This document shows positions 10,630-48,700 of a stretch of 64,000 nt of DNA, one piece after another. This stretch comes from Podarcis bocagei (lineage: Eukaryota): NCBI GenBank assembly GCA_964188305.1, contig OZ076886.1; one strand, written 5' to 3'. Position 1 is the first letter of the stretch; every line of letters begins with the position of its first letter. Position numbers and translations under genes: made by a program. The notes beneath the pieces are model-generated. The model was not told the DNA's origin. It saw only the letters and a program-made list of their open reading frames with translations, and did no database searches.

Positions 10630-10826
10630 TTACAAAAAGGGGAACAGTCTCTTCTTCAGGATGTAAAGCACGGTGGCCAAAAACAAGGCAAGGGCGAGAA
10701 AGATGAGCAGTTTATCTGTCAGCTCCCTGCGGTTGTACTTGGTAATGAGCTTCCGTCCCAGCTGTATTGTCCCGGACATGGATTTGAATTCCTCATTGGC
10801 ATCCAGAATGGTTCGTGAAGAACTGA
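10630..10826 (-). CDS. BNIP1: BNIP1 exon 6 coding part (VSSSRTILDANEEFK...TM anchor...KKRLFPFL*)
   Basis: 197 nt to TAA; total 687 nt = 228 aa; C-terminal transmembrane tail anchor. Confidence 0.97.
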
Positions 10827-13252
10827 CTGAAAAGAGAAAATGCAACATTTCAGCCCAGCGTTTCAAAGGCACTATCAAAAGCACACATACTATGCAAGTC
10901 CACTTTGGGTCCTGTAGCACAGAATAAAACACACAATGCAATAGGTACATTGGCTCAAAGCCCCATGGAAGCAGGCTGCAGAACTTTTCCATTTGAGAAA
11001 AGCTGAGGACAAGTCTGGTGAAGACAACGCAGCACAAAGGAGATTGTTCCATTAGTGCAAGCCTATCTGCTTGCCTGATGAAATGATGTCCCCTCTCCTT
11101 CCCCAACCCACCAGAGCATATTTGGGGAAGGTGCGGTGAAAGACATGCAGCAGGAGGGGAGAAATCCTGTTGTGTCAGAAGAAGTCTAGCTTCCATTAGC
11201 AAAATGGGTTAGCTGAATACAGCCCAACATTTGCCTTCATCCAAGAACCACCACAGACCAAATGGCCTTGCATTTTTCTGTGGAGCCCCATTCTTAGAAG
11301 ACAAAGAGCCGGCCCATATCCATAAGTGAAATTGACTGTGATTAGCAAGTCTCCCTGTTGCAATTAGAAAAATCTAATCTCAGTCCAAAATTTCATAATG
11401 AAGCCAGATGGAATGATATCAACTGGCTAAGTAGAAAAGACATAATTGGCAATGGGAGTAAATGTAGATTTGGTGTCAATGGCATGCTATCCGCTGCAAA
11501 AAAATGACAGATACTGCAATGTTGATGTTACTTGATAACAGGCTTTGTGGGATTTCCAATGTGGCAGTTTAAAAGCCAGAATGTCCGTTTTCACCAGCTG
11601 CTAATTTAGAATAGAGTGGAAAATTTTGAAACTGAAAAGAAAAGAGTTAAGATGATACTGTTTTGATACATTTCCAAACAAGGTTAGAATGTGGATCAGG
11701 AGCTGTTTAAAATCAATCATGATAATACCTTGGGGAGAAATTTAATACAGCACTAAGGAGATCACTTTATCTGTGCAAACATTTTTGCTTGCCTGATGGA
11801 ACTATCTCCTCCTCACTCCCCTTTGGGCTGTTCATGGGTTCTCCCAATCCTCAAGGAAGGCACGGGAGGAACACTGGGGTTAGGGGAAGCCCTGTTGCAC
11901 TGGCAGAAGTCCTTGCACAGGCTTCCACTAGCAGGACCACTTAGTTGAATATGACCTACGGACTTCCTAATACACACAAGTTGCTCTGATGTCCAGCACC
12001 TTTTCTCTGAAGTGAGTAAAAGGTCATTTTTTAGTCTTTCTCGCTTGCAGAAATGTCAAGTAAACTAAAAACATGTGTGCTGATCATAATAAATTACACA
12101 GCTTTGCAACCAAGTACAAAATATATTGCAAGAAGTGGCCCTAAAATGAACCACTGTGCAGGGCTTCAGTTTCCATTATGGGAGGTAAATTAAAACACAC
12201 ACTAATGGCAAAATGTTTAGAAGCAAGCAGCTAAGGAACCAGTATATTCCTACATAGGTGGCCCCCAGAAGGGCATTTCAGTTTGCAAATACATTTTGCT
12301 TGAGAATGAAATTTTATCAGAACCAAATACGTTTCTTTGCCATTTTATTTTACAACCAAAGAGAAAAGTTTTGTCATTCTCATGGTACATGAAAGATTGA
12401 GGTTGTTTATCATGGGAAGCGACAACTGTGGGCTTCCTGACTCCACAGATTATTTATTGCTTGCTGCTGTAAGGACTTCTTCATTTTTCCATCGTGGCAA
12501 CATTTTAATGGTAGATTAAGTACAGCTGGCTTTTTCAAGACGAGTGACCTTTGCTAGCTATACCTCAACCAAACAGGATGGACTCTTTAACAGAGGACAG
12601 TCTCACTGCCAAGACTGTCACTTAGTGAGAGAGGAAGCATACACTGAGGAGCTGCAGACAACCATCAGCCCTGGAGGGAGAAGGAAGAGAAGAGGCGGAC
12701 ACTGTGTTTATTGAATCCATCCTTTCTGTTTCTCCCAGCAAAGAAAAGGCAGAAGGTCCAGCTGGTCCACTTTCCAAATGACCCACAAATTTTAACAGCA
12801 GATTTGATATACAGTTTTGAGGGCTCAAAACTGTCAGGCCAAACTCTGGCTTTCTAACGCAAAGCCCAAAACTCTTTCAGAAATGCTTTAAGACATTGCT
12901 TGTATTGAGTGAAATAAGTTAATGTGGGTGGGAGAAAAAGAAAAGCCCCATTTGAAACACATGCATGTTCTTCAGAGTCCACGCTGTAGAGGTCTGGATT
13001 TCATACATGGTATCCTGATGTGTGATATGATATGATGATACGACATGATATGACATGACTTGACATATTATACCATAATATCAACATGCTGGTTAGGGAG
13101 AAAGGAGCGTTTCTTTTTCCATAGCTGGTGAAGTAGCCAAGAGAGCTACTGGAGGAGGGAATCAATCATGTTGTTCCTCCTTTGCCAGTTCACTGCAATT
13201 CTGTGCTTCCCGGCATAGGATTAAATATTTAGCTGTAGGAGGCAGCAAGCGA

Positions 13253-31398: not shown

Positions 31399-32473
31399 CT
31401 GGTTCAGAGAAAGTATCACTGATGTCATCATCTTTGTCATCCTCGTAATCTTCCTCCTCATCCTCGTTTTCAGAGAGTTCATGCTCACTTCCGAAACCTT
31501 CATCGTGATCTTCATCCTCCACCTCTTCTTCTTCTTCTTCCTCCTCCTCCTCCTCTGGATCAGCTTTGCCTGCACCGGCCTGCTCACCCAAACTGTCCGT
31601 GACAAAGAGGGAATAGTTGTGTTCTTCCTTCTTCTGTGAAGGATCTGAAACAGAGGTGCTGGCAGAGAGGCTGTTCTCCTCAGCAACTATTCCTGGAGTT
31701 TCTTGAGGTGGAGTGAGGAGCAGAGCCTGAGTCTCTTTAAAAGGCAACACTGGACTGTGACTCTGAAGGGAATCATTCCCTTTCCGCTCTTGTTTCTTTG
31801 CTACAGCTCCACAGTAGCAGGTGTTTTCTTTTGCAGCATCAGCGTTCGCCTGGCTCATGGAAGACCTGCTCTGCGGTACTGGATTTATCTTTACTTTTGC
31901 CTTTTTAACATAATCTTTGCATTCAACATGCATGTTCACTTTCTCATTATTGTACATGTTGGTCTTCACCATGATTTGTGTGCTTGAATTGGGTTTGCCT
32001 CCTTTCAGGGCAGATTCTGATAAAGGTGCCTCAGCCTGGCCCGTCTTGGATGAACAAACGGGGGCTGCTGCTCTGGTTGCAATCTTCTTCGTTGGCAAAG
32101 AGGTTAACTGGGTTTGCTTTACACTGAACAGCAATTCTGGGTAGCACAGTGAATCTGAGACAGGCTGAGAGTCCTCACTGTTGAGCTGAGCCAGAGTTGG
32201 AGTTTTACTTATCACCTCTTCATCCTGGTACGGGCTTGAAAAGTCATCAAGGCCCAAATAGTCCACCTCTTTTGTTCCCCAGATGTCACAGCTGGTTAGT
32301 TTGGTGTACTTTGTCAAATCTTCACAGTACGTGTCCCACTGCTCCCAATTTGCGGGGAAAGAGGTTTCCGTATCCAGAATGTCTGTAAAGGACTCCAGGT
32401 TCTCAAGATCTTTACAGTCCTCTACAGAAAGGAGGTTATCCCTGGAACTCTGCTGGTAATCCATTTCTCTGTC
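31399..32473 (-). CDS. CREBRF: CREBRF exon 4 (DREMDYQQ...acidic region...DTFSEPG)
   Basis: 1075 nt, overlaps the 362-aa ORF; WEQWDTYCEDLTKYTKL and EEHNYSLF motifs; AG/GT boundaries. Confidence 0.98.
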
Positions 32474-34081: not shown

Positions 34082-34207
34082 CACTTCATACATGAAATCT
34101 GGATCAGAACTGTTAGCCAACAGATCTGTGCTCATCAGAGTCTGTTCTGAAAACATGTGGTTTCGAAAGGCATCCCCAAAAGGAGGGTCCATTCCACTCA
34201 CACTAGG
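34082..34207 (-). CDS. CREBRF: CREBRF exon 3 (PSVSGMDPPFGDAF...DPDFMYEV)
   Basis: 126 nt, AG/GT boundaries, recognisable CREBRF N-terminus. Confidence 0.97.
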
Positions 34208-35124: not shown

Positions 35125-35133
35125 CTGAGGCAT
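35125..35133 (-). CDS. CREBRF: CREBRF exon 2 coding part (canonical start, MPQ)
   Basis: ggaaATGCCTCAG|gtaata, joins in frame to PSVSGMDPPF. Exon 5' boundary uncertain (candidate exon starts 35379, 35314, 35265). Confidence 0.92.
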
Positions 35134-35844
35134 TTCCAGGCCCAGATCCCCTAAGCCTAAGTCCAAACTTGTTGTTTTCTTTGCTTGCAAATTCCGTTCC
35201 AGCTTTTCTTCAGGGTCAATAGGCAACATATAACTCATGCAATGGAGATTCACAGATTTATTTTCCTAGAAAAAGCTTAGTGTCGACTACATGGAACTTT
35301 TCTCTGGGGACTTTCTGCATGAAATAAAACCAAAACCAAATATTCAGTTTGCATTGAAATGAAGATTGCTCGGTAATTTCTGAACAAAGAAAGTTTCCAC
35401 AACCTAATACCCATGAATCCTAATGTCAGAACTGAGCAAGTACACCAATTTCAGTTTGAACACTGTTTGTGAGATTTTTTTACATAGCATGATCTGAGTC
35501 CATGATTTTATGAAGTCCAAGAGGACAAGTTCCTGCCTTGAGGAGCTTGGGGAGGGACCTGCTCTCTTGGACTTCATAATTTCATCACAGGGGAGAAAGT
35601 AGATAAAACAGAAAAGGAAGATGTATTCAGAGCAATGAGAGAAGTGAATGATTTTGGCAGCAGAGCAAGGGCTAGAGCTGAGGGGACCACCAGAGAGGAG
35701 AGGGCATGAAAATCAGGAGTACTTGTTGAAGAGACACAGTGCAATGACTATATTTATGAAATGTTGAAATGGAGAATGACATGATTTGACAATGGGCTGA
35801 ATATGTGGACATATGAGGCAGTGGTGAGGGGGTTCCTGAGAATG

Positions 35845-37681: not shown

Positions 37682-38291
37682 TACAAGAATTAAGTTTGGG
37701 TTCAAACTGGACCATGAGTCACACAGCAGCAGGCAGGCAAACAGAGTTGCACAAGACAGGCCTGGTTCTGACCACCACTTAAACTAGTTCCTTTAGTTGC
37801 AAAGTGGAGAACATTAGAAGAATGCTTTATCTGCATTTACTGGTTAAGAAAATAAAAGTCATGTATCTCTTACACCCAATTTATGTGAAAGAAAACTCCC
37901 CTGAAGCATTTTAATCCATGTGCCACCAGTATGATCATAGACCACAAGACTATAAAACAAACAAGAGCTCTAAAACTTGAAGCTATCTCCTCACACACAG
38001 CTTTCATTTTACAAACCTGCAGTCATTTCAAAAGCTTCTCTGGATTAACTTCCACTGTACAATTTAAATACTGCCTAAGGATCACAACTTGAGAGCACTG
38101 AGCACTCTATGCAATACTTTGAAACATAAGGAACAGGATTAAAGGAATGACTTCTAATGTGATACCTGGTGATTTATAATCTAGAACCACAAGAGCAGAA
38201 CTGTTTTACTGATATTTTAGAGAATCTTCTTCAATTTAAGCTTCTGCTAACGACAAAGCTCCACACTTTATGCAACAATCAAATTTGCTAC

Positions 38292-38943
38292 CCGGCCACT
38301 GGGCTCATCACCTCCTGGCAAATAGAAGGGGAAGAAATGGAGGCAGTGAGAGATTTTACTTTCTTGGGCTCCATGATCACTGCAGATGGTGACAGCAGTC
38401 ACAAAATTAAAAGACGCCTGCTTCTTGGGAGAAACGCGATGACAAACCTAGACAGCATCTTAAAAAGCAGTGACATCACCTTGCCGACAAAGGTCTGTAT
38501 AGTTAAAGCTATGGTTTTCCCAGTAGTGATGTATGGAAGTGAGAGCTGGACCATAAAGAAGGTTGATCACCAAAGAATTGATGCTTTTGAATTATGGTGT
38601 TGGAGGAGACTCTTGAGAGTCCCATGGACTGCAAGAAGATCAAACCTATCCATTCTTAAGGAAATCAGCCCTGAGTGCTCACTGGAAGGACAGATCGTGA
38701 AGCTGAGGCTCCAATACTTTGGCCACCTCACGAGAAGAGAAGACTCCCTGGAAAAGACCCTGATGCTGGGAAAGATTGAGGGCACAAGGAGAAGGGGACG
38801 ACAGAGGACGAGATGGTTGGACAGTGTTCTCGAAGCTACCAGCATGAGTTTGATCAAACTGCGGGAGGCAGTGGAAGACAGGAGTGCCTGGCATGCTCTG
38901 GTCCATGGGGTCACGAAGAGTCGGACACGACTAAACAACAACC
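38292..38943 (+). mobile_element. BovB (RTE clade) LINE, 5'-truncated 3' fragment, antisense in CREBRF intron 1
   Basis: FTFLGSMIT, VMYGSESWTIKK, IDAFELWCWRRLLRVPW and GRQRTRWLD motifs; AGAGTCGGACACGACT end with (CAA)n tail. Confidence 0.95.
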
Positions 38944-41900
38944 AAATAGTCAGCACTGGTTTTGAACCCGTGGATCAGGGGTTAGGACCATCAGGTTGAA
39001 AGGCCAAATGTGCCCCTCCACCCCTCACTGTCTGGTCATTCTCTCCAGGCCACACTCCTCATTAGCTCTACTTCATACCTTCCTTGAAGCTTTTGCCTGG
39101 CTGGATTGTGTCCTTGAATTCTTATAATGTCTCTTGCTTCTCTGAGTGGATACAGAGAGGTATGTGAGTTTATGTAGATGCTAACCTATGGTATGAAAGT
39201 AAAATTTGCATCTAACGCTCTCACTGTGTTTGTCTCTGGCCCTGCCTACCACTGGCACATGGCCTCTGGAAGGTTGCCTAGAAGGGAATACAGCTCTTGG
39301 GTTGAAAACAATTCCCCATCCCTGCCATCTAACTTACCTGTAGCAAACATGTGCAATGGAAGCGACAAGTGTGTATTCTGAAAACACCCAGGTGCAACTC
39401 AGTCAAGCCATGGTATTCTCAACCTTCATGCAAAGTATGAGGCCACCTTTGGAAGCCATAAGCATTTCAGTTACAAAAGGGAAGAGACTTATTGGCTTAT
39501 CACATCTAGCAGTTGTACCTAGAATACAGATTCTGTCCTTATTACTCTTCTGACTTGTCAATGAGTTCTAAACTTTTTCCTGCCCAAAACACTTTAACGT
39601 GGACAATTCTGTCAAAGAAATTTGTGCAAAACATGAAACTAGTTTTTTTCAAAAAAGTTTTAGCATTATTTTCAGCACCTGGTTTTAGAGATTTTGGAGG
39701 ACCAAAATGCTAGTTAACAACACGAGGTATACATGCCCATATTTTCCTTCTCATAAGATACCATCAGGGCTAAATTAGATATGTTAAATGTTTGAAAGCA
39801 ATTAACTTGCACACTTTGGGTTATGTAAATAGCAGTCATAGCAAAGCCTGAGTAGCCAAAGGCGTCATGGGGGAGGGGAGAGTTTCACACTTTCCCCCTG
39901 CCAGGTCTGACAAAAATCACATATCTGATGCTATTGTTCACATTTCTAGAGAAGCTTCAACTTGGAGATAAAAAATGTGCACATTAATTGCATTCACACA
40001 ATTAACACTATGTCTAGTTTAACCCTCAAAGAAGTCCCAAACAATGACAAATTGTATCCAGATGTTTTACTCTTAGAAAACTTGCTTTTTATTCTTCTTG
40101 ATGATGTAGGGGACCATGAGGATTATTTTCCTCAAAATTACAAACTTTCTGGAAGCAAGTTCCCTTCTCTCTCGTTTGTATCTGTGAGTTCTTGCTCCTA
40201 CCATTTTTTTTTACTGTCTTACAGAAGGTGGCCTTTCAAGCAGAGAGTGGTATTTATAGAAAGATCTTTTTTTCTGTCTGCTGCCTGGTGTACAGAACAC
40301 TTTAGAGTCAAGACTTGAAATGCACAAAAGAATCATCTGCTCTATTAATAGCTTTCAAAAACAACTTTAGCATTCAAGACCGTGGTGCCAGATTACGAAA
40401 ACTGTTTCATGCTATGAATGTGTCCTTATGAAAGAATTCATGTCCAGTAGCTAACTGGTTACGCAGTGATACTTTGCTTCCGCACATTACATAAGCGTGT
40501 TGGCAAATACTAGTCCATATCACTGCCAGCTAGCTTGTCAGTCTATTTTAAGACAGAGTTACCTATCCCCCATCCTGTAGCCAACAGTCAAAATTTCATA
40601 TTTGTGGCCACTGTGAAGGGAGGTCTTCTGCGTTCATTACAAAGTTTTCTTCCCCTCAGTACTGTGAACAAACTCTCAAAGGTAAATTGATTATGGAGTT
40701 ATAATTCTATAGAAGACATGCCATATTGCACTGAACCCTAAACTATGAATTCAATGCTGTCCATTTTGAGGATGGCCATATGCCAAGCAGAGTCATTTTG
40801 TGGTAGTGCCCATGGTGCAACCTTAAAATTTCAGAAATGCTCATGGGCCCCAGAAGGTTGAGGACCCCTCTTAGGGCCTACATATTTTATTTATACATGT
40901 CCAGGCAGGGGGTGGTGGTAAGGGATGATGTATTAAAACTACTTTCAGTAATGAGCCATTAACTCCCCACCAGTATTTACAAGAGTTAAAAAGAAATACT
41001 TCCCTCAGAAACGTCATTTCCTGAACACACCAAATTTGCTCAGGTGCAGTAAAAAAACACCACTATATAGTACTTTGAACGTTAAATGTACATTAGAAAT
41101 GAACTATGGAAACAGGTGAATTTGATTTTCATTTTATCATGGCTATGAATGAAAACACTTTCTCTTTCTCCTAAAAACTTGAAATCCAAACAGAACAGAA
41201 AGTGAAATAGCTAAGAAATTATGCAACTGATACATGTTCCAAAAAACAAACAAACAAACAAAAACCCCTGGAGGTCAATCTAGTACAAACTTTTAGTAGG
41301 GGAATAGTTTAGAGGCAAGGATTGGGAAATCTTCAATGATCAAATTATTTTCAATTTGTGCTCTAATTCTGAAGCTAACAATCAGTAGGGTGATTTTTTA
41401 ATCTTGCGTTTTTAGCTGTCTGCTGTTGGTACTGCCTCTATTCTGGCTTGATCATGAGGTAACTAGGAAATTTAGCATCCAGCAATTTGAGGAGGGAAGG
41501 TGGAGGATGCCTCCATTCCAGTTAATGCAGGTAAGGGGAGAATACTGGAATTACAGGAGTGACAGGAATTGCTGGTGCCAGTGAAAAGGTCAGCTAAACA
41601 TTTGCCTAGGCCTTCTTCTAAGTCCTTTTCCCAGCCATGGCTCAAGATGCCTTGCTAACTTGTTCTTGGACTCACAAGGTATTGCTGCTTAATAATTAAG
41701 AAAATTTGATTTGATTATGGATGATGAAGCTATCCTGAGTTGTATCACCAAGACATGGATCGATAAGCTGAGAGCAGATCCCTCTCAGTTGTGTACATCT
41801 GAGCAGTCTGTGCAGAACTACCACAGATTGGGCATTGCCATGGGCTATAAAGATCCCATCTGTCTCTGCACGTTTCTGAATGGATTCCAGTTCTGAGCAT

Positions 41901-48243: not shown

Positions 48244-48385
48244 CTGGCGCCCCGTCCCAGCGGGGTAATGGGGGGTGTCTCAGTGGGGGCCCCCACTTCT
48301 GCTGAGGCTCCAGCCCTGGCCCGGCCCCTCCATGCCGCTCTGGGGTTTGTTTTGTTTATGTCCCTTCCTGACGGGTTCCCGGAAA
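48244..48385 (-). other. CREBRF: CREBRF non-coding exon 1 (5'UTR)
   Basis: CAG|GTAAGG donor after 48244; GTCAGGAAGGGACATAAACAAAACAAACCC resembles my recollection of the mammalian CREBRF 5' end; TSS approximate. Confidence 0.8.
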
Positions 48386-48700
48386 TCGCGTGACTCGCCC
48401 CCATCACGTGGGCTTTTTATTTAAAAAAAAAACCGGGGGAGGGGAAAGAGAAAAGCAAAGCCAGGAGAAGGCAGAAAGTGAGGAAGCCAAGGCCACCAAT
48501 CAGAGAGCGAGGAGCCGAGAGCCAATCAGCGGCCGCAGAAACTGTTTTCCCTTCTCACGTGACCGCTTCAAGTGAGAAGGGCGGGGGAGGATAGAAGGAA
48601 GGGAACGTTCTGTTCTCAGCTCGGAGTGACGGCGGCGAGCCCGAGAGAGGCACGGCGGCGGCAGCTGCTAGTTTCGAGCCGCACGGCGAGCTCGCGGGAG
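48386..48700 (-). promoter_or_regulatory. CREBRF CpG-island promoter
   Basis: TCGCGTGAC 48386-48394, CACGTG 48405-48410, CCAAT 48496 and 48522, TCACGTGAC 48555-48563, GC box; CpG-rich. Confidence 0.85.

Follow-up and report, generated by a model that had tools for sequence, protein, structure and literature searches.

Here we analyse the 5' leader of CREBRF in a stretch of 64,000 nucleotides from Podarcis bocagei (GenBank assembly GCA_964188305.1, contig OZ076886.1), referred to below as the window. CREBRF lies on the minus strand, with the exons beyond exon 4 following on the same strand, and exon 4 is 97% identical to CREBRF of Zootoca vivipara, which marks the window as DNA of a lacertid lizard. 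The first four exons are placed as follows (a slash marks a splice site).

48244..48381, minus strand: exon 1, non-coding; 5' end approximate; placed by alignment with the transcript L023 and by the donor ccag/gtaagg
35125..35314, minus strand: exon 2, leader and first three codons; acceptor cag/AAAGTC, donor CAG/gtaata
34082..34207, minus strand: exon 3 (PSVSGMDPPFGDAF...)
31399..32473, minus strand: exon 4, the large exon, which serves as the coding control; 3' end approximate

The acceptor of exon 2 falls between 35315 and 35314 and its donor between 35125 and 35124, the gt occupying 35124-35123. The exon 1-exon 2 junction CCAG/AAAGTC is contained in L023, a skink transcript that was assembled from a public run, and bases 1-120 of L023 align with 48381-48262 at 91% identity. 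By this splice junction exon 2 begins at 35314, and exon 1 spans about 48381-48244. Exon 3 ends (34082-34084, minus strand) in a GTG codon (Val), so that the window reads FMYEV-DREM; nearly all other tetrapod sequences have Leu at this place (FMYEL-DREM). Predicted isoforms that skip exon 3, joining MPQ directly to DREM..., occur in lizard, snake, primate, rodent and shark (P0001, P0006, P0024, P0040 and P0053). Elsewhere in the window, intron 1 of CREBRF contains a 276-residue ORF (38169-38999, plus strand) corresponding to the C-terminal part of a LINE reverse transcriptase, BovB-like by its sequence. The end of an ORF at 10630-11202 (minus strand) resembles the C-terminal tail-anchor of BNIP1/SEC20, which would agree with the known BNIP1-CREBRF neighbourhood.

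The 3' half of exon 2 is open in the frame of the coding sequence, and it contains several potential starts; two further upstream reading frames lie 5' of it.

35134..35238, minus strand: 35-codon in-frame extension ORF, which opens with the first in-frame AUG and runs up to, but does not include, the usual AUG; read from the sequence, with similar N-termini in squamate and turtle models
35236..35238, minus strand: upstream in-frame AUG1, weak context (tgcATGa; T at -3, A at +4)
35227..35229, minus strand: in-frame AUG2, weak context (tatATGt; T at -3, T at +4)
35200..35202, minus strand: in-frame CUG (aagCTGg; A at -3, G at +4), 23 codons 5' of the usual AUG
35131..35133, minus strand: usual CREBRF AUG (gaaATGc; G at -3, C at +4); CCT CAG and then the donor of exon 2 come next
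35266..35268, minus strand: TAG, the nearest upstream in-frame stop, bounding the open stretch
35287..35292, minus strand: ATG-TAG start-stop element in exon 2, in the frame of the coding sequence
48280..48333, minus strand: uORF1 in exon 1, 17 codons, strong Kozak context (ggcATGg)

A first-pass annotation of the window had described these starts as a hidden N-terminal extension of CREBRF, and every coordinate that it gave (AUGs at 35238 and 35229, the CUG at 35202, and a usual AUG at 35133 that lacks G at +4) is correct. The 105 nucleotides upstream of 35133 are stop-free and in frame, as claimed, and the open stretch in fact extends further, over 44 codons to the TAG at 35268-35266. All candidate starts lie within exon 2, again as claimed, and its boundaries are backed by the skink transcript. 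By our own estimate, which depends on the assumed stop frequency, 44 open codons would arise by chance in 3-12% of cases. The length of the open stretch is thus unremarkable by itself, and what goes beyond chance is its behaviour across species. With respect to N-terminally extended proteoforms made from an upstream in-frame start (the PANT class), such a start is present in the mature leader, in frame and with no intervening stop, and it is conserved in relatives, either as AUG1 or AUG2 (all squamate models and the turtle model) or as the CUG (10/10 leader DNAs).

Public gene models already contain the extension. About 30 squamate CREBRF models (662-670 residues), together with one turtle model (Chrysemys, P0062), begin at the upstream AUG, and the length of the extension is almost fixed. 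The squamates concerned are geckos, skinks, a cordylid, lacertids, iguanians, anguimorphs and many snakes, and the models are mostly RefSeq entries named 'CREB3 regulatory factor'. Among the sequences listed, the extension comprises 35 residues in 34, 32 residues in elapids, the models of which start at AUG2, and 34 residues in Python. AUG1 is the annotated start in most squamate models (MSYM.. or MNYM..), at least one of AUG1 and AUG2 is kept in every squamate model examined, and none of the squamate homologues retrieved begins at MPQ. Bird, mammal, shark and fish models have MPQ as their N-terminus. The sole length change seen is a one-codon in-frame deletion in Python bivittatus (P0146, residues 30-35; ..EDLPE-MPQ versus ..EDLGLE-MPQ). 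In a search with region 1-40 of a gecko protein only 15 candidates were scored; a short-ORF profile search added few sequences, and an exhaustive profile search of representatives yielded 7 proteins. The extension is therefore not hidden, as had been supposed, since in squamates and turtle it is annotated from a conserved upstream AUG. The same models make 35238, and not the CUG, the obvious first candidate start here, and AUG1 is, on sequence grounds, the most likely start of a long form in this lizard.

Two models stand apart. The extension of Elgaria (P0158) contains a locally scrambled KSSVFD stretch, which could be a compensated frameshift. A teleost model from Danionella cerebrum (P0083) has a 36-residue extension before MPQ, with K-L, Q, R-S-[F/L] and D-L at distances like those of amniotes; this hints that the leader block may be older than amniotes.

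To compare the leader at the DNA level we aligned ten sequences: five from squamates (the window, Eublepharis (L006), Ahaetulla (L007) and two that are skink-like (L022 and L023)), three from birds (L002, Paridae (L003) and L008) and two from mammals (L001 and L012). The sample thus covers squamates, birds and mammals, and several of its sequences come from public runs. It is biased against disrupted leaders to the extent that some sequences were found through extension-containing ORFs; this bias does not affect the Paridae genomes, the metagenome bird contig, or L001 and L002, both of them transcript contigs. A DNA-pattern scan for the leader returned one bird contig and three bacterial chance hits, and a protein-pattern scan of metagenome contigs for the leader gave no match. 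The bird contig (L008; Ga0065711_1007211, a 25-kb JGI metagenome contig) is bird genomic DNA containing CREBRF exons 2 and 4, that is, host DNA. Mammalian CREBRF exon 2 likewise turned up in many public runs (L012-L021), probably as host reads.

Over the last 81 nucleotides (27 codons) preceding the usual AUG, the alignment of all ten sequences is gapless and none of them has an in-frame stop, against totals of 15 and 11 stops in the +1 and +2 frames. Within this segment the CTG, the A at -3 and the G at +4 are invariant (10/10), the 23-codon spacing to the usual AUG is fixed, and in the block AAGCUGGAA only the base at -1 varies, between G and A. From CUG to AUG the frame is thus kept across amniotes, as the first-pass annotation had proposed, with neither a frameshift nor a stop in the ten sequences. 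Frame conservation of the kind looked for in non-AUG extensions, namely absence of stops and indels in multiples of three, extends over the same 27 codons, the Python deletion being of one codon. The human leader given in the annotation, reading KLERNLQTRKKRSLESDSQDLGLE before M, matches exactly a mammalian ORF from a public run (P0135).

Further 5', beyond about codon -27, a 1-nucleotide indel separates birds and mammals from squamates, so that only the proximal 27 or so codons are in a common frame across amniotes; one mammal has an additional 1-nucleotide gap 8 nucleotides upstream of the CUG. AUG1 is present in 5/5 squamate DNAs, and AUG2 is lost in Ahaetulla (ACG) and in L022 (CTG). The leaders of the three birds and two mammals contain no in-frame AUG, and any extension there would therefore need a near-cognate start, for which the invariant CUG is the best candidate by its sequence. 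A non-AUG extension proper has no in-frame AUG upstream of it, which is the case in the bird and mammal sequences and is not the case in the window (AUGs at 35238 and 35229). In birds, the homologue of lizard AUG1 (tgcATGg) is out of frame because of the indel and opens a 10-codon uORF, the TAA of which ends two bases before the CUG (L002 bases 66-98; L003 about 2896-2928; also L008). The same AUG would thus be an extension start in squamates and turtle and a uORF start in birds.

We then asked whether the leader evolves as protein, using an MGK+F1X4 model on a fixed tree with kappa free and a likelihood-ratio test against omega = 1. The value of omega was 0.78 for all ten sequences over 27 codons (p = 0.36), 0.69 for squamates over 35 codons (p = 0.29) and 0.80 for birds and mammals (p = 0.62); the exon 4 coding control gave 0.085. 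With 10 DNA sequences and 27-35 codons only, these codon tests have low power. An omega below 1 at nominal p values of about 0.02-0.04, obtained under an MG model with kappa fixed at 1, was discarded, the signal being gone once kappa was free. Compared with a column-shuffle null, the synonymous fraction was 0.250 versus 0.196 ± 0.050 for all ten sequences (p = 0.15), 0.357 versus 0.229 for squamates (p = 0.028) and 0.155 versus 0.200 for birds and mammals (p = 0.70). Because of the modest excess in squamates, their extension may be under some peptide-level constraint.

Nor does the distribution of changes over codon positions resemble that of coding sequence. Parsimony steps in the leader are flat over the three positions (17/27/26; 0.59/0.78/0.74 per site), whereas exon 4 shows 0.31/0.17/1.31 steps per site over 125 codons in the same taxa, and variable columns in birds and mammals number 6/11/9. 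Mean identity among squamate proteins is 0.76 in the extension and 0.91 in the remaining protein. The coding signature expected of a conserved non-AUG extension, in dN/dS or as an excess of third-position changes, is thus absent at this sample size (n = 10, low power), and the protein-type selection that the first-pass annotation had anticipated is not seen, omega of 0.69-0.80 being indistinguishable from 1 and the codon positions flat. The leader therefore appears to evolve like protein only weakly or not at all.

As nucleotide sequence, by contrast with third positions of exon 4, the leader is slow: lizard-mammal identity is 0.77 over the 81 nucleotides versus 0.50 at exon 4 third positions. 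Invariant sites cluster in AA(G/A)CTGGAA, in AGTTTGG and in the 25 nucleotides before the AUG. In squamate exon 2, all five gap blocks (5/5) lie within the 84 columns that precede AUG1, and the 105-nucleotide ORF is free of them; by our own calculation the probability of this arrangement is (84/189)^5 = 0.017. Stop avoidance was simulated with the observed 70 substitutions at the observed sites and neutral choice of base; depending on kappa and base frequencies, no stop arose in any of the ten leaves in 3-27% of runs. Stop avoidance by itself is not significant. On sequence evidence, it is as nucleotides that the leader is constrained.

A structured RNA element was tried as the object of this constraint and rejected. 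The consensus fold reaches -5.8 kcal/mol with no compensatory pairs, the leader of the window folds no better than its shuffles (z = +1.09), and Rfam returned no match at E <= 1. Purines make up 69% of the block (A 0.40, G 0.29), a composition that would suit a splicing enhancer or an unstructured leader. At the protein level, an AlphaFold2 model of the extended N-terminus has a mean pLDDT of 56 and a pTM of 0.14, with a tentative helix at residues 9-20 only; a model of such low confidence suggests that the tail is disordered and is uninformative beyond that. In our reading of the sequences, the tail of sauropsids has a Leu-rich pattern (L-x3-L-x2-L-x-L) similar to a nuclear export signal, and the pattern is broken in mammals (..LDSQDLGLE, ..GSDSQDPGLE).

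The leader also contains reading frames upstream of the extension. The skink transcript has a uORF of 17 codons, identical in length to uORF1, and uORF1 could govern the choice among the starts downstream. The ATG-TAG element, CCATGTAG, is common to 4/5 squamate DNAs, is lost in the snake Ahaetulla (CCAAGTAA) and is absent from birds and mammals. Just 5' of the transcript-supported exon 1, an ATG at 48404 (minus strand) opens an ORF in the frame of the coding sequence (MGASHAISGNPSGR...) that is stopped by the TAG at 35289-35287; this ORF is homologous to the N-terminus of the 746-residue isoform X1 model of Pogona vitticeps. The arrangement is not of the ATF4 type, in which a permissive uORF is followed by an inhibitory uORF overlapping the coding sequence out of frame: uORF1 is present, the proximal AUGs are in the frame of the coding sequence, and the ATG-TAG element does not overlap it.

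In the scanning model, a leader AUG is normally used to some extent even when its context is weak. Taking these observations together, we favour, at a probability of roughly 0.55, a weakly constrained N-terminal tail that in this lizard would be started from an AUG through leaky scanning. The 105 nucleotides form the 3' half of exon 2 and so part of the mRNA leader, and a 43S complex would meet, in the order given by the anatomy, uORF1, the ATG-TAG element, the weak AUG1 and AUG2, the CUG and the usual AUG. Under the scanning model some ribosomes would start at AUG1 and make CREBRF with 35 additional N-terminal residues, and most would leak past to the usual AUG at 35133. Translation from AUG1 is predicted from the scanning rule and from automated models, which take the longest ORF, and the strong-context uORF1 and the ATG-TAG element upstream could alter start usage.

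What selection visibly keeps would then be the frame, an upstream start codon and blocks of nucleotides, including AAGCUGGAA and the 25 nucleotides before the AUG. The frame could be kept in the absence of amino-acid constraint because a leader read through by ribosomes would, once frameshifted, turn its tail into a harmful, overlapping inhibitory uORF. The conserved blocks would also suit roles at the level of nucleotides, for instance as context of the start site or as splicing enhancers rich in purines. The pattern is not that of a peptide whose sequence has a particular function. In birds and mammals there would be at most a low-level near-cognate extension from the CUG, of the common, unselected kind.

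A purely non-coding leader is the likeliest alternative, although we regard it as rather unlikely. Conservation would then act at the level of RNA or DNA, through start context, binding sites, or purine-rich exonic splicing enhancers that act on the small exon with the start codon; T-poor composition would account for the open frame, and the squamate 'extension' would be a longest-ORF artefact with little or no long protein made. The flat constraint over codon positions, an omega not different from 1, the purine-rich block (69%), evolution slower than that of synonymous sites at long range, the partial conservation of the upstream part of exon 2 and the weak context of AUG1 and AUG2 all speak for such a leader. 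Against it stand the leader AUGs themselves, which the established scanning model predicts to be used to some extent, the retention of one of the two in-frame AUGs in every squamate examined, and zero indels in the frame against five in the adjacent leader. The lack of conserved RNA structure (-5.8 kcal/mol; z = +1.09) and of an Rfam match also counts against it.

The proposal of the first-pass annotation, an amniote-conserved CUG-started proteoform, stands in part. Its conserved elements, that is, the frame, the spacing, the CUG itself and the A(-3)/G(+4) context, are all there; the functional peptide is not supported, the substitutions carrying no coding-type signal. In its full form, a functional long CREBRF from the CUG at 35202 with 23 residues that alter stability or localisation, we consider it improbable. 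The invariance of the CTG and its context in 10/10 sequences at a fixed 23-codon distance speaks for it, together with the behaviour of the other Leu codons of the block, which vary synonymously (TTG/TTA/CTA, CTG/TTG) where the CUG never does. No sequence has an in-frame stop (simulation P = 0.03-0.27), the sauropsid tail has its export-signal-like Leu-rich pattern, and human CREBRF figures in a ribosome-profiling list of non-AUG extensions. Yet in birds and mammals omega is 0.80 (p = 0.62), the synonymous fraction falls under the shuffle mean and variable columns are spread 6/11/9. Stop avoidance alone is not significant, the Leu-rich pattern is broken in mammals, two AUGs precede the CUG in this lizard, and CREBRF is missing from both PhyloCSF-supported lists.

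Bolder still, and in our judgement quite improbable, would be an ancient translated module present throughout amniotes and perhaps reaching teleosts, in which uORF1 would tune the choice among AUG1, the CUG and the usual AUG under stress, and a long CREBRF form would result in which the Leu-rich, export-signal-like tail shifts where this nuclear regulator resides or how fast it turns over. That the stretch is open by chance in a leader free of any constraint is very improbable, for although 44 open codons are expected at roughly 3-12% by our own estimate, the cross-species alignment refutes it, with 77% lizard-mammal identity over a gapless 81 nucleotides versus 50% at synonymous sites and an extension length fixed in about 30 squamates.

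Features of this kind are known; squamate gene models already annotate this one, and a published list of predictions includes the human gene. In Fedorova et al. 2022 (PMC9789052), human CREBRF appears in the sheet GeneOntology_RiboSET_ext (3,304 genes), which derives from the top 5,000 non-AUG extensions supported by ribosome profiling in Trips-Viz, and in the localisation table; neither the PhyloSET/RiboSET table of that study nor its corrected 177-gene PhyloCSF set includes it. The general conclusion of that work is that most such extensions are translated without selection, and our codon tests for CREBRF point the same way. CREBRF is not mentioned in Ivanov et al. 2011 (PMC3105428), and our literature search found no paper that ties CREBRF/C5orf41 to N-terminal extensions, non-AUG starts, uORFs or start codons.

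CREBRF resembles the RiboSET_ext class (PMC9789052) in having an in-frame leader 5' of the annotated AUG that lacks a coding substitution signature. It is unlike that class in that in squamates and turtle the extension is AUG-headed and annotated as coding sequence, and unlike most of its members in keeping frame, spacing and CUG over about 320 My. With PTEN-L/PTEN-alpha, c-MYC p67, FGF2 and the Ivanov set (PMC3105428) it shares an in-frame CUG in good context at a fixed distance from the AUG. However, the extensions of this group show coding-type conservation and have been tested, whereas CREBRF fails the coding-signature test, and it is found neither in the Ivanov text nor in the 60- or 177-gene PhyloCSF sets.

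CREBRF also resembles the stress mRNAs of ATF4/CHOP type, which are under uORF control: it too is a stress-related regulator, and its leader combines a strong-context uORF, in exon 1, with additional AUGs upstream of the coding sequence. CREBRF differs in that it has no inhibitory out-of-frame uORF overlapping the coding sequence, the proximal upstream AUG being in frame in squamates; in birds the proximal AUG gives a short uORF that ends before the coding sequence. The LAP*/LAP forms of C/EBP-beta and the p42 and extended forms of C/EBP-alpha are leaky-scanning isoforms; for C/EBP, experiments have established both the isoforms and what the uORF does. These bZIP proteins share with CREBRF a weak first in-frame AUG, a better later start, uORFs upstream and two N-terminal variants. 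Unlike theirs, the two forms of CREBRF are predicted from sequence, and in the tail that would be added no amino-acid constraint is detectable.

CREBRF regulates CREB3/Luman and the responses to starvation and ER stress; in humans, a variant of the gene marks a well-known locus for obesity and diabetes. Because of these roles, a second N-terminal form of CREBRF, if true, would matter for the interpretation of antibodies, knockouts and variants. Our analysis makes this less likely: squamate models contain the extension already, a large list of predicted extensions names the human gene, and the tail is nearly neutral, which makes a sequence-specific function unlikely. Of mild interest are the persistence of the frame and the CUG block for about 320 My in the absence of coding-type selection, and a homologous AUG that lies in frame in squamates and turtle and out of frame in birds. 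Since the leader contains a strong-context uORF, the choice of start site in CREBRF could be regulated.
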